Shown in pieces: positions 1,560 to 6,860 of a stretch of DNA of 64,000 nucleotides (position 1 is the first letter of the stretch; every line of letters begins with the position of its first letter). Location of the stretch: the NCBI RefSeq assembly GCF_018350175.1, contig NC_058371.1, positions 163,060,001 to 163,124,000 on the forward strand, written 5' to 3'. The notes beneath the pieces are model-generated. The model was not told the DNA's origin. It made no database searches and saw only the letters and a program-made list of their open reading frames with translations. Origin of the DNA: Felis catus. Its lineage: Eukaryota. Made by a program: the position numbers and the translations under genes.

Positions 1560-1950
1560 ACTGTAGGCGTTTCCCCTCCTCCCTACCCACTCAGCTCAGA
1601 GGTGGGGCCATTGAAGGGGGCGGGCATTCCGGTCGAGGGGTGGAGTTGGGGCCAGAAAAGATGCCAATGGAACGCGAGCTTTCCCATGGTTAGCCAATTG
1701 AACGCGCTCTGGGACCGCCCCCATCCGCTGATTGGCACGACGAACCTCCCAGTAGTCTTGTGTCTCGCGAGAGTTCCGGTTTTCGGCGGTGCTTTGTCAA
1801 TTGGTCTGGCTCCTCCGGCTCTTGGAACCTTTTGCCCGGTCGAGGCTGAGTAGGGGGCTGTCTGGTGTCGTGGGTACGGCCAGGGACTTTGACGAGGCGC
1901 AGGCTGGGAGCTGCGTCTCCTCCCACCCTGGAGCCCGAGGCCCAGGTGAG
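1560..1950 (+). promoter_or_regulatory. CpG-rich housekeeping-type promoter with putative first exon ending at 1945
   Basis: CCAAT boxes at 1664-1668, 1694-1698, 1731-1735 (rev) and 1800-1804 (rev). GC boxes near 1616-1624 and 1716-1721. Perfect TCTCGCGAGA palindrome (BANP/ZBTB33-type) at 1763-1772. ETS core TTCCGG at 1774-1779. Donor CCCAG|GTGAGG at 1945/1946. Confidence 0.75.
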
Positions 1951-2607
1951 GCGCGGCCCGGGCATTGGGTTCTCGGGCTGGACCTTTACCTGCCTTCTCC
2001 TCAGGAGCGGAGATGGGCTGGCAGAGACGCTCTGCTGCCACTTGGCAGAAGGACCCCGTGGTAGGAAAGCGAGACCCGATTAAGCCCTGCCAGGTACTGA
2101 CTCACTCCACCTATGTGGAAGGGTGTGCAACCTTGAAAGGAACATTTGGATTAAAAATAGTGGGTGAACTTGTGGTTCTAATGCTAACGCCCTTTTTAGT
2201 TCATGGAGTACAGTACAGTATACTATGCTTCTAGGGTTTAACCGCCTTACTTAAGTGTCCCAGCCCGTTTTTAACACTTGCTTTTTCTGCTAATTTACAG
2301 AGTTCAAGTGGAGTCACACTTACATTTTGAACTTCGTTTCTAATGCAGACACTTAAAGCAGCTCTATTCACCTCCCAAAAAGGTAATGCGGATTCCTCCA
2401 GTAAAGGAGCATATCAGTATTTATTGAATTCTTGTGCTTGTCAAAAACCACAACATTATCTGTGTTTTCACTGAAGGAAAAGCACTGCCAAAAAAGCGGG
2501 GGGTGGGGGGGTGCCTGGGGAGATGGGGAGGCAAAGGAGGATTGGGAAGCAAATACTTAACCCTGTAGATACCTGAATTTTCACCCACCGGTGTGAAAGT
2601 TTGTAGA

Positions 2608-3060
2608 AAGTAAGTGTTGGTGAGGATATGGAGGAACTGGAACCCTTGTGCATTGCTTGTGGGCATGCAAAATGGTGTAGTTGCTTTGAAAAAGTTGGAT
2701 GATTTCTCAAAAAATGAAACACAGAGTTACCATATGATCCACTGAAAGCAGACACTCAGTTACTGGTACATCCATGTTCATAGTAACATTGTTTCCAATA
2801 GCCAAAGGGTAGAAACAACCCAAGTAAATGTAGAAAGGAATGGATAAACAAAATGTGGTACGTACATGCAATGGAGTATTTGTGAACCTTAAGGAGTCAG
2901 TAATACCTGCTACAACATAGGAGAACCTTGAAAACATGTTAAGTGCAATAAGCCAGACACAAAGACAAAAACTGTATGATTCCACCGATATGAGGAACTT
3001 AGTCAAATTCATAGAGACAAAAAGTGAAACAGAGTTTACCAGGGTCCAGGGAGAGGAGAG
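2608..3060 (+). mobile_element. L1MA/L1MB-type LINE-1 3' fragment
   Basis: GTGTTGGTGAGGATATGGAGGAACTGGAACCCTTG...CAGAGTTACCATATGATCCA...TGGATAAACAAAATGTGGTA; truncated by the N gap. Confidence 0.8.
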
Positions 3061-3264
3061 NNNNNNNNNNNNNNNNNNNNNNNNNNNNNNNNNNNNNNNN
3101 NNNNNNNNNNNNNNNNNNNNNNNNNNNNNNNNNNNNNNNNNNNNNNNNNNNNNNNNNNNNNNNNNNNNNNNNNNNNNNNNNNNNNNNNNNNNNNNNNNNN
3201 NNNNNNNNNNNNNNNNNNNNNNNNNNNNNNNNNNNNNNNNNNNNNNNNNNNNNNNNNNNNNNNN
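3061..3264. other. Assembly gap (204 N)
   Basis: Run of N seen directly. Confidence 1.
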
Positions 3265-3630
3265 TATATTTGCAACCAATCATTGGGTAACTTTAATTCC
3301 AGCATTTGGGTTGTACAAACATAATTTGTGAAACCTTTTCAAGTTTTGATTTCAGAACTAAATGAGAGAAATTCATGTTCAAAGCTTACAAGATGCTGTT
3401 TTTCAGTGTATGTGTGTTTGTTTTAAATTCTGAATACACTAGATAGTATGTGCAGGATGAATATAGGTTACGATGTTTAAATGTTAGAATTCCTAAACAC
3501 TCAACTACATACATTGTATTATACACACTGGAGACAACCAAATCTATTCTCGTTATGTATTTGGAAATAAACTATTTTGATATCTTACATTTGACCTATC
3601 AATCAACATCATTAGAAAAACCATAATTTC

Positions 3631-3840
3631 AGGGCACCTGGGTGGCTCAGTTGGTTAAGCGTCTGACTCTTGGTTTCAGCTCAGGTCTTGATCCCATGGT
3701 CATGAGATCAAGCCCCACATCAGGCCCTGGGCTGAGTGTGGAGCCTGCTTAAGATCCTCTCTTTCCCTCTGCCCCTCTTCCCTGCTCACACTCAAAATAA
3801 ATAAACTTAAAAAAATAAAGTGTTAAAAACAAACAAAAAA
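3631..3840 (+). mobile_element. Can-SINE (older SINEC subfamily)
   Basis: GGGCACCTGGGTGGCTCAGTTGGTTAAG head, CT-rich body, A-rich tail. Confidence 0.9.
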
Positions 3841-4290: not shown

Positions 4291-4715
4291 ATGAGTGACC
4301 GTTATTTAGAGCAACGAATTAATGTTTTGTGTAAAGTTAAATAAATCTGCAAGTGAGACACTTGAGATGTTAAAAGTAGTTTATGGTGAAGAAGTAATGT
4401 CGAGAGCAAGAGTTTTTGACTGGCACAAAAGGTTTAAAGAAGGCAGAGATGATATCCATGGTGATGTGAAAAGTGGCTGTCCAGTTATCCACAGAACACG
4501 GGAAAACATTGAGAAGGTCAGAAATCGGGTTGGCTCAGATAGCTGAAAAGTGAAATGTGGACTAAGAAACAAACTCATGCTGAAAGAAAACTTGCACATG
4601 AGGGAAGATTCTAGGAGGATTATATCTCATTCTGTTGTGGTTCAGGACCCTGCCGAGGCCAAACGATAACAGAGCTGCACATGAACCTGACACTTGGGTA
4701 TATATTCAGGGCACG
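4291..4715 (+). pseudogene. GVQW3-like mariner-transposase-derived exon, disabled
   Basis: ATG at 4291 reads [11 protein letters not shown]. After a frameshift near 4322 it reads [44 protein letters not shown]...SGCPVIHRT, closely matching the human GVQW3 N-terminal Mos1-type HTH as I recall it ([25 protein letters not shown]...[21 protein letters not shown]). TGA at 4544-4546, then remnants LMLKENLHMR and DTWVYIQG (mariner TGDETW region). Candidate acceptor TTTCCAG at 4225-4231. Confidence 0.75.
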
Positions 4716-5047
4716 ATCCTACAGACAGTTTAGTTTCACTGGTCTTGGAGTAACTTGTATCTGAATCTCAAGTGAGCTGAGCTTTTTCAAACGTGTTCCG
4801 TTGGCTTTGTAGGTACATGATTTGAGCAGAGTCAAACCTGCGGAGTTGAGTGTGACAAAGGAGAGAGCGTGGAGCCTAGAGGTTTATTGGGAACCTGGCC
4901 CTCTGTTACCGTAGTACCTAAATTTCTACCTTGTCTTTTCAGGGTGAGCTCATTTGAATAATCAGTAGGTTACCTACAGTCTGGGCAGTTAAACTTTCAA
5001 CAGGGAGCTGGACATCAGTGTTACTCTGTATGGAAATACTTCATGTT

Positions 5048-5240
5048 ATTTTTTTAACGTTTATTTATTTTTGAGGGAGAGAGTGTGAGCGGGGCAAAGA
5101 GACAATGGGGGGAACAGAGGATGCAAAGCGGGCTCTGCACTGACAGCAGTGAGCCCGATGCGGGACTTGAATTCACGAACCGTGAGATCATAATCTTAGC
5201 TGAAGTCGGATGCTCAACCAACTGAGCCTCCCAGGTGCCC
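5048..5240 (-). mobile_element. Can-SINE
   Basis: Antisense SINE: TTTATTTATTTTTGAG...GAGCCTCCCAGGTGCCCC. Confidence 0.9.
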
Positions 5241-6567
5241 CTTTATGGTACTATTTCAACAACGATAAGAAAAGAATGGCCATCTTTAGGCAGAAATATT
5301 CAGACTTGTAATAATGGAATTTTTGTGGTGGGAGATTGAGGTCAGATGTTGGAAACTGGAATTCAAATCTGTCAGCAAGAATGAAACAGAAGAGGCTGTA
5401 GGAATAGTGGGCAGTTTTAGTAAAAATATACTCTTCCCTTCCACTCCCCCCACCCCGAAATCAGGACCTGATTTTGGTCAAAAGCCCACAAAACTTTCTA
5501 TTCTTTATGTAATCTAAATTTTAGTTTCAAATGGATTCTTATATATAAACTGTTTGGGTCTGGAATTTGGCTTGAAGGGTAGACAAATAGAGTTCAATTT
5601 TGTTCCTAACTTCTTTCACCAGGAGAACGAGATTCCATGCTTCGAGTTTTGAAAGGCATGACTGCAGTTAGCAACGTGTGAATAACAACATACACAATCT
5701 CTTCATCAACAACAAGGAACTGCATTCTGACCTTCACATTGTCTACGTGTGCTACTGAGTGTGGGGTCATATCCTAAGCTTCAGCTCTAATAAGCATTCA
5801 TCACAGGGAAGGTACGATCTTGGATATTCAGTTGGCCACAAATAGCTTTAAGTACATTTATGGTCAAGTCAAATGGTAGCTTTGCTGAAACATTAATAGA
5901 AAAGCATTGGTAATTCATGTCAGAATGAGATACAAGATAATAGGTGAAAAATGATTTCACAGAAAAGAAATTTTGATAAACCTAGAAAACAATTTCAGTT
6001 ATTTTTGTCCATTAACATTAGCATTTTAGTTTAAAGAGCTACTTGAATCACATGTTGTTCCTTCCCATAAGAAGAGATTTTGAGTACAACAGGATGAATT
6101 TCTCATTGAGAAACTTGTTTTTGCCCCAGTTTCCTTTCTAGTCTCCAGTAGGACACTGTCATCATTCAGTATTGGTATTGTAGCAACTTAGATGCACCAA
6201 ATTGCAACATATAGGACTTAAGTCAGAGCCCCATGGCAGTGACTCTGAAAAGACTAGTTTTATTAGTTATACTATTAAGGGTTTTTTGTTGCTGTTTTAA
6301 AAGACTCCCAGAAATCCAAATTTACATTTTGTGGAACATGAGCCAAAACTAATTGAGGTTGTTATGGAAAAATGGTCTCATTTTAATGGTCTGTATTACC
6401 TCTGGGACCCTGCTGGTCAAAGCTGTGTGGCCCACAAGGCAAAAATTAGAATGATGTTTTTCATATTATCTTAATTTTTTATTACTGACTTTGTTACAGC
6501 TTGATCTTTGGAGGTGCTTTGTACTGTGTAAATGAAATTTACTGAAAATGTACATAAATGACGTCCC

Positions 6568-6573
6568 AATAAA
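6568..6573 (+). terminator. Candidate polyadenylation signal of the + strand GVQW3-like unit
   Basis: AATAAA with upstream TGTA motifs (~6527 and ~6549) and a downstream U/GU-rich tract (TTGATTTTTTTATATTAGTGTTG...TGTGTTGTTTT). Use in vivo is inferred. Confidence 0.5.
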
Positions 6574-6860
6574 CCATAAATTGATTTTTTTATATTAGTG
6601 TTGATCATCTGTGTTGTTTTATCAGGCATTTGCTAATCCTCCATATTTTAGCCACCTGCTCATGTCTCTAATGGTTTTAATCTAAATAAAGTTTAACTTC
6701 ATTGCCATACCTCAAATTTTTAAAAAATCGACTAATGGATAGATAAAATCTAACCCCCCTGACCCGCAGACCCATAACCCATAATAAAAACACAGCGTAG
6801 GAGGCAATGTGGTGAGGTTCCAGCTCCAGCTAGACTTGTGATCTGAAGCTTTCAGTCTAA

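Follow-up and report, generated by a model that had tools for sequence, protein, structure and literature searches.

A decayed mariner relative of GVQW3 beside DANCR in the domestic cat, set between candidate transcription signals

Placental mammals have a conserved, uncharacterised, domesticated mariner HTH gene, GVQW3 (FLJ37770 or YK006). The human gene is found on a contig of 135,127,769 bp, which we take to be chromosome 11 of T2T-CHM13. Human DANCR is located on chromosome 4, where it adjoins USP46, carries SNORA26 within its intron 2 and has ERVMER34-1 (HEMO) as an annotated neighbour, which in the human gene order lies on the side of DANCR that corresponds to the locus described here (PMC7591992). 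A CpG island of cellular origin drives HEMO (PMC8978518), whose ORF has been retained in the domestic cat (PMC12704712). Here, we describe a stretch of 64,000 nucleotides from Felis catus (the window; NC_058371.1, positions 163,060,001 to 163,124,000) in which a GVQW3-like transposase remnant lies next to DANCR, flanked at 1560-1945 by a CpG island that resembles a promoter and at 6568 by a canonical poly(A) signal. Judged by its sequence, the locus is distinct from GVQW3, as an initial annotation of this DNA had proposed, because it belongs to a separate clade and DANCR is a chromosome 4 gene in humans. The element at 4228-4898 is probably an old, internally deleted mariner from the same small family or insertion wave as the progenitor of GVQW3, never kept as a gene in the lineages seen and subject to near-neutral decay.

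The position of the locus is given by a small nucleolar RNA and its host gene:

9620-9739, minus strand: SNORA26 (139 bits)
8360-10480, minus strand: DANCR-like snoRNA host gene, placed by the SNORA26 match, with exon limits and a poly(A) signal at about 8378-8383 read by eye

Since SNORA26 is on the minus strand, its host gene is convergent on the candidate unit described below; on inspection the last exon of DANCR ends near 8360, so that some 1.8 kb separates its tail from that of the candidate unit, in agreement with the tail-to-tail arrangement first suggested. A HEMO envelope was also considered within the window and rejected, as no envelope-like or long ORF was present in 1160-8400, and HEMO therefore lies outside the window. 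A literature search yielded no link between ERVMER34-1 and any mariner.

The mariner fossil spans 671 bp (4228-4898), is internally deleted and is made up of the following parts:

4228-4246, plus strand: left terminal inverted repeat, CCAGGTTGCCCACTAACCT, 63 nt upstream of the ATG
4291-4681, plus strand: decayed transposase N-terminus (HTH_48 and the remnant of a second HTH), from frame and homology analysis
4880-4898, minus strand: right terminal inverted repeat, reading CCAGGTTCCCAATAAACCT on the minus strand

In an inverted-repeat search the two ends were complementary at 15 of 19 positions and perfectly so over the outer 7 nt (CCAGGTT), and only one of 3000 simulated sequences matched this repeat pair, in a test devised once the pair was already known. 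Terminal inverted repeats with YYAGGT-type ends thus flank a transposase frame, the arrangement by which Tc1/mariner elements are recognised, again in a post hoc test. The flanks of 4228-4898 carry no TA target-site duplication (the left flank reads TT and the right CC), plausibly through mutational loss in an old copy. No Pfam match to a DDE/DD34D catalytic domain was obtained in any open piece of 4547-4958, and with only about 600 nt between the ATG at 4291 and the right repeat the DDE domain must have been deleted. A search of the window with 1116-1152 masked gave no further copies of the element.

The ATG at 4291 opens a mariner HTH domain, as had been claimed, and this is of the Mos1 type: 4313-4543 matches Pfam HTH_48 with a score of 38.7 bits, where the cutoff is 24.1 (E 1.1e-9). 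The second HTH is partly deleted in the alignment. Residues 1 to about 134 of GVQW3 align to 4291-4666 (E 1e-33), so that the description of a GVQW3-like exon is borne out. The frame is nevertheless disabled by the very lesions that had been noted: a 5-nt deletion at about 4322-4326 shifts it (253 nt are present, as against the 258 that the intact relative P0002 requires), the HTH frame ends in a TGA at 4544-4546, and additional shifts and, past 4666, more stops follow. The window copy also has an in-frame deletion of 9 codons that is common to the hyena copy. With these lesions there is no intact GVQW3-type ORF of about 210 aa at 4291, and 4228-4898 codes for no GVQW3-like protein. In the order of events that we propose, the 9-codon deletion would predate the split of cat and hyena, the stop at 4544, of the CGA-to-TGA type, would have arisen within the cat family, and the 5-nt frameshift would have come last, in this lineage only.

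Relatives were sought with phmmer among 1.84 billion cluster representatives, and the 150 best-scoring ones returned were compared. Among these, the piece from the window was nearest to the GVQW3 representatives, at 66-71% identity, and no other exceeded 58%; ten representatives were looked up, and the eight that were not GVQW3 came from lobster or from environmental or run assemblies, none of them with a mammalian name. In the tree the window copy groups with P0002 (support 100/91) and with a hyena pair (99/95), and this fossil clade is separate from GVQW3 (87/84). One of its members, from the spotted hyena, bears the name YK006, by which GVQW3 was formerly known. Branch lengths are 0.1-0.4 in the fossil clade and 0.007-0.05 in GVQW3. 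At the protein level only, cat and hyena are 78% identical in the fossil clade, whereas GVQW3 proteins are 91-96% identical between placental orders and 58-60% identical to the window copy; in this protein-level comparison the fossil clade changes about 10 times faster than true GVQW3. Its members have nested derived states in common in the alignment and are all short ORFs of at most 138 aa, several with frameshifts, truncations, lost starts or early stops of their own. Orthology within the clade beyond hyena rests on protein fragments, and the shared sequence is wholly inside the element.

These observations bear directly on the suggestion that the locus is a second domesticated GVQW3-like gene, coding in other mammals, which lost its coding capacity in the cat lineage alone and kept its regulatory frame. 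In keeping with such a history, a start of 10 residues is kept across the fossil clade, the promoter and donor signals are in place together with a poly(A) signal, and P0002, 96-97% identical to the window copy, is without the 5-nt frameshift. P0002, however, has the same TGA, which ends it after 86 aa, the hyena copy has the 9-codon deletion too, and the independent lesions and long branches of the clade are at odds with a gene that had been maintained outside cats. No annotated full-length protein of the fossil clade was found among 88 matches, while over 60 species have a protein named as true GVQW3, and no intact coding copy of the fossil lineage was present in any species among the relatives found. 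The tree that had been proposed as a check thus speaks for a separate second locus with long, fossil-like branches; the idea that it codes in other mammals was not upheld, and we consider a second domesticated gene very improbable. The sequence instead suggests a second GVQW3-family locus that looks like a neutrally decaying fossil.

A processed retrocopy of spliced GVQW3 mRNA, inserted beside DANCR, would also account for the similarity beginning at the GVQW3 start codon and for no other of the 150 best-scoring representatives being as close as GVQW3. All placental GVQW3, however, read ETHHLL or ETRHLL where the fossil clade keeps ETLEML as outgroup mariners do, and the fossil clade therefore split before this change was fixed in GVQW3. 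Furthermore, tblastn at E<1 matched nothing in 1500-12000 to residues 140-210 of GVQW3 (an isoform-variable part), the similarity is not followed by a poly(A) tract, and the ends resemble mariner inverted repeats. Of all the histories considered here a retrocopy is the one to which we attach the least credence, and the locus is best read as a mariner insertion in its own right.

Whether the fossil is part of a transcription unit is a separate matter, for which the following features are relevant:

1560-1945, plus strand: candidate first exon in a promoter-like CpG island (GC 0.62, CpG observed/expected 0.69)
1664 and 1694, plus strand: CCAAT boxes inside the CpG island
1731 and 1800, plus strand: ATTGG boxes inside the CpG island
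1763-1772, plus strand: TCTCGCGAGA motif inside the CpG island
1946-4231, plus strand: proposed intron, from the donor and acceptor positions, which includes an assembly gap
4232-6590, plus strand: proposed terminal exon, AT-rich, with AATAAA at 6568-6573 followed by a GU/U-rich stretch

The individual signals named in the initial annotation are all present, as signals only. The donor after 1945 (CAG/GTGAGG, GT at 1946-1947) is the sole strict match to MAGGTRAG in 1500-6700, and the CpG island, the AG at 4230-4231 and the poly(A) site at 6568 are where they had been placed. The assembly gap (3061-3264) is wholly within the proposed intron and touches no signal, and the intron span across it is nominal. 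By their appearance we take about 2600-3060 to be an L1 ORF2-tail-like stretch, about 3633-3820 a carnivore SINE and about 5044-5243 an antisense SINE; the L1-like flank of the gap had no match in Pfam. The open frame of the candidate exon 1 (1756-1944) gave no database protein that crosses the proposed splice junction, which is uninformative either way. The pyrimidine tract of the candidate acceptor is short, and AGs 11 and 14 nt upstream compete with it. The acceptor AG falls within the left terminal repeat of the mariner.

A CpG island with TCTCGCGAGA and CCAAT, followed by a consensus donor within about 180 nt, is typical of a working promoter. In addition, 14 small contig sets from seven studies hold 61-83% of the words of 4232-6590, which is far above random low-coverage DNA, their RNA type being a guess and none being recorded as RNA. 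We are therefore marginally inclined to the view that the CpG island drives a non-coding RNA toward DANCR, in which the fossil would be part of an exon or of retained sequence; any such RNA is without GVQW3-like coding capacity. Use of the exact junction from 1945 to 4232 is somewhat less likely than not, and if it is used the terminal CCAGGT motif of the mariner would supply the AG.

The signals may also have come together by coincidence, with an orphan or bidirectional CpG-island promoter that is never spliced to 4232 and a fossil that is plain intergenic DNA, perhaps of a multi-copy family such as MARNA. The acceptor is weak and inside a transposon end, chance alone would give one AATAAA per 1.2 kb or so in this DNA (some two in the AT-rich 2.4 kb), and a strong donor-like site (CAG/GTACGT at 4198/4199) would, with other sites, permit different exon models; furthermore, no run holding 4232-6590 is recorded as RNA. 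MARNA, an ancestral mammalian mariner repeat, is known from more than 1,500 aligned blocks (PMC2689173). The promoter-like composition of the island and the coverage of 4232-6590 in the contig sets count against mere coincidence, and the protein searches returned no large family of mammalian sister fossils, only two mammalian lineages of this type. Coincidence has a substantial claim, which we put at a little under even, and a non-coding RNA from the CpG island is the reading that we marginally prefer. A more ambitious form of it is unlikely, namely that the fossil is a conserved terminal exon of an undescribed lncRNA from the TCTCGCGAGA CpG island, that the mariner repeat (CCAG/GT) gives its 3' splice site, and that convergent transcription modulates the output of DANCR and SNORA26, which would amount to co-option at the RNA level in many mammals.

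GVQW3 states that are common to the placental orders are missing from the fossil clade. A non-domesticated sister copy provides a built-in neutral control for the constraint on GVQW3, and the fossil gives the GVQW3 family a minimum age. Should the transcription unit be true, DANCR, a much-studied lncRNA, would gain a new convergent partner; should it not be real, the locus is no more than an ordinary transposon fossil with an orphan CpG island next to it.

Several known systems invite comparison. ERVMER34-1 is like the candidate unit in its side of DANCR and its CpG island and differs in its envelope ORF, which is missing from 1160-8400. As in transposon-derived lncRNA exons and convergent lncRNA pairs, the candidate terminal exon, here known from sequence alone, starts in a transposon end, holds SINEs and faces DANCR tail to tail. 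Mammalian mariner fossils of the MARNA type are likewise old, short elements with internal deletions and inverted repeats at their ends, and are common to mammalian lineages, but they form a large family, in contrast to the two mammalian lineages of the window type in the protein searches. From GVQW3 itself the locus is set apart by its place beside DANCR, its separate clade, its roughly 10-fold faster change at the protein level and its broken frame, by the lack of any match in the window to the GVQW3 C-terminal tail, and by the absence of an intact copy of the fossil lineage among the relatives found. The two are nonetheless alike in that neither dog GVQW3 nor the window fossil has a DDE domain in Pfam, and they share the same N-terminus and the architecture of HTH_48 plus a second HTH, colinear over residues 1 to about 134.

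In three-frame translation, an opening stretch from the ATG at 4291 is followed by a frame shift and then by a 77-residue open piece (4313-4543), which matches HTH_48, the Mos1 transposase HTH (Pfam, E 1.1e-9), and is closed by a TGA at 4544. The window copy holds 253 nt where P0002, a database protein that is its intact close relative, needs 258, and the initial annotation was therefore right in its estimate of about 5 nt missing. The distribution of the lesions among relatives allows them to be ordered: a 9-codon deletion shared with hyena, then the TGA at 4544, which P0002 also has and where hyena has Arg, and finally the 5-nt deletion, confined to the window's lineage.

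This frame is enclosed by an inverted pair (4228-4246 and 4880-4898), both arms of which begin CCAGGTT when read outward-in and which agree at 15 of 19 positions. Mariner ends begin YYAGGT, as established for Mos1, Himar1 and Hsmar1. A motif-anchored simulation test, with the outer 7 nt perfect and the left arm at most 150 nt upstream of the ATG, was defined after the pair had been seen, and in this post hoc frame the observed match was reached by 1 of 3000 first-order Markov simulations. The pair thus delimits an element of 671 bp. Since the ATG and the right end are separated by only about 600 nt, and since no DDE domain was found by Pfam on the open pieces of the element, it is an internally deleted copy. 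Its flanks show no TA duplication. Origin as a retrocopy of spliced GVQW3 mRNA is unlikely, because GVQW3 residues 140-210 have no tblastn match (E<1) within 1500-12000 and no A-tract follows the similarity.

The signals from which the initial annotation had built a transcription unit were all located by sequence inspection, composition and a motif scan. The promoter-like region at 1560-1945 (GC 0.62, CpG o/e 0.69) is a CpG island with the perfect palindrome TCTCGCGAGA at 1763-1772, flanked by two direct (1664, 1694) and two inverted (ATTGG; 1731, 1800) CCAAT boxes. This palindrome is known from bidirectional TATA-less promoters, and the island may therefore fire leftward too. It terminates in the donor CAG|GTGAGG (GT at 1946), the sole strict MAGGTRAG match within 1500-6700, and the motif set together with this consensus donor about 180 nt downstream speaks in favour of a real promoter. 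At the other end of the unit, the AATAAA at 6568 is followed by a GU/U-rich stretch. The proposed intron contains an assembly gap (3061-3264), crossed by no claimed signal or frame, whose left flank resembles an L1 ORF2 tail, with no Pfam match.

The proposed acceptor AG (4230-4231) belongs to the CCAGGT with which the left end of the mariner element begins. It has a short pyrimidine tract and two further AGs 11 and 14 nt upstream, and a strong donor-like CAG|GTACGT stands at 4198/4199, 30 nt upstream of the mariner left repeat. These features count against the exact 1945-to-4232 junction, and the last allows an exon ending at 4198/4199 as an alternative to the original exon model. A protein-database query with the open frame of candidate exon 1 (1756-1944), seeking proteins across the junction, was blank and uninformative either way. 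Fourteen small contig sets from seven studies contain 61-83% of the words of 4232-6590, a content that hints at transcription only indirectly, as RNA is a software guess and none of the 14 is recorded as RNA. A non-coding RNA through the mariner fossil is a plausible prediction.

Downstream, SNORA26 was found on the minus strand at 9620-9739 (Rfam, 139 bits). Human SNORA26 lies in DANCR intron 2, and DANCR lies between USP46 and ERVMER34-1 (PMC7591992). Around the cat snoRNA a DANCR-like host gene (8360-10480, minus) was delineated by eye, with three exons and SNORA26 in the second intron:

about 10480-10427, minus strand, DANCR-like exon (by eye)
about 10157-10020, minus strand, DANCR-like exon (by eye)
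from about 9148 onward, minus strand, DANCR-like exon (by eye)
about 8383-8378, minus strand, DANCR-like poly(A) signal (by eye)

With the exon limits so placed, the two candidate units face each other tail to tail at a distance of about 1.8 kb, in agreement with the arrangement first proposed. No match to mir-4449 reached the Rfam gathering score in the window. The HEMO (ERVMER34-1) ORF is retained in domestic cat (PMC12704712). Within 1160-8400 neither a long ORF nor an envelope-like one occurs, which places HEMO outside the window. Just upstream, on the minus strand, of the DANCR-like start region lies a GC-rich 10/20-bp tandem array (10608-10743, about 13 and 7 copies), and at 43200-45150 GC-rich ORFs crowded on both strands point to a large CpG island.

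A word-based query with the 77-residue piece yielded 16 short proteins, and P0023, the longest of these, used as the next query, yielded 88, which fall into true GVQW3 and the window's own set. True GVQW3 proteins, about 210 aa long, carry that name in more than 60 placental species, among them afrotherians, xenarthrans, dog, mustelids, seals, panda and human. In human the gene is presumably on chromosome 11 of T2T-CHM13, in line with the 11q13 location given in the initial annotation. The window's set comprises P0002 (96-97% identity to the window copy), the pair P0005 and P0020, of which P0020 is Crocuta crocuta KAF0883276.1 ('YK006 protein, partial'), and about 12 fragments from run assemblies. 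YK006 is the former UniProt name of FLJ37770. FLJ37770 is GVQW3 (PMC11377751). The short ORFs P0004, P0019 and P0013 share their first 53-55 residues identically or nearly so with GVQW3 and diverge thereafter; P0004 occurs on 53 contigs, and its remainder is similar to the DANCR-side clade (DD.HGDV.SGHPVTH). Chimeric assembly across a shared 31-mer, a third copy or splice variation may account for these ORFs.

When 1.84 billion cluster representatives were scanned by phmmer with dog GVQW3, the window piece was nearest to the GVQW3 representatives among the best 150 (66-71% identity, against at most 58% for any other). Ten of these 150 were looked up, and the eight non-GVQW3 ones were lobster or environmental/run assemblies, none with a mammalian name. 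Together with the two protein sets, this points, within these searches, to two mammalian lineages of the mariner type rather than to a cloud of fossils. With the dog GVQW3 N-terminus, a lobster protein annotated as 'GVQW3-like' shares 60% identity, and 349-aa mariner transposases of environmental origin share 48-56% (database proteins P0151 and P0155 for both), so that the source family is widespread outside vertebrates; in invertebrate annotations 'GVQW3-like' merely denotes a mariner HTH.

A maximum-likelihood tree was computed from 41 rows, for which every break in the window copy was bridged by X. In it the copy groups with P0002 (support 100/91) and this pair with the hyena pair (99/95). 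The whole window set is one clade (87/84) separate from GVQW3, and the proposed second GVQW3-family locus is thus real and common at least to hyena. That it was a gene lost in the cat lineage only is not supported: members of the clade have frameshifts of their own (P0014 and P0016), an early stop (P0007) or lost starts (P0008 and P0010), and no member is longer than 138 aa. Its branches measure 0.1-0.4 against 0.007-0.05 for GVQW3 end branches, and at protein level the cat copy shares 78% identity with the hyena one, against 91-96% for GVQW3 between placental orders. On these comparisons the locus appears to behave as a neutrally decaying transposon fossil. Nested derived states are shared within the clade (for example VVYGEE for EAYGDE, DDIH for EDVR, KVKFR in a subset), a pattern more consistent with a single locus that diverged along with its species than with many copies arising separately in a burst. 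The clade has retained the ETLEML of outgroup mariners, whereas all placental GVQW3 carry ETHHLL or ETRHLL, which indicates that it branched off the GVQW3 lineage earlier than the placental radiation.
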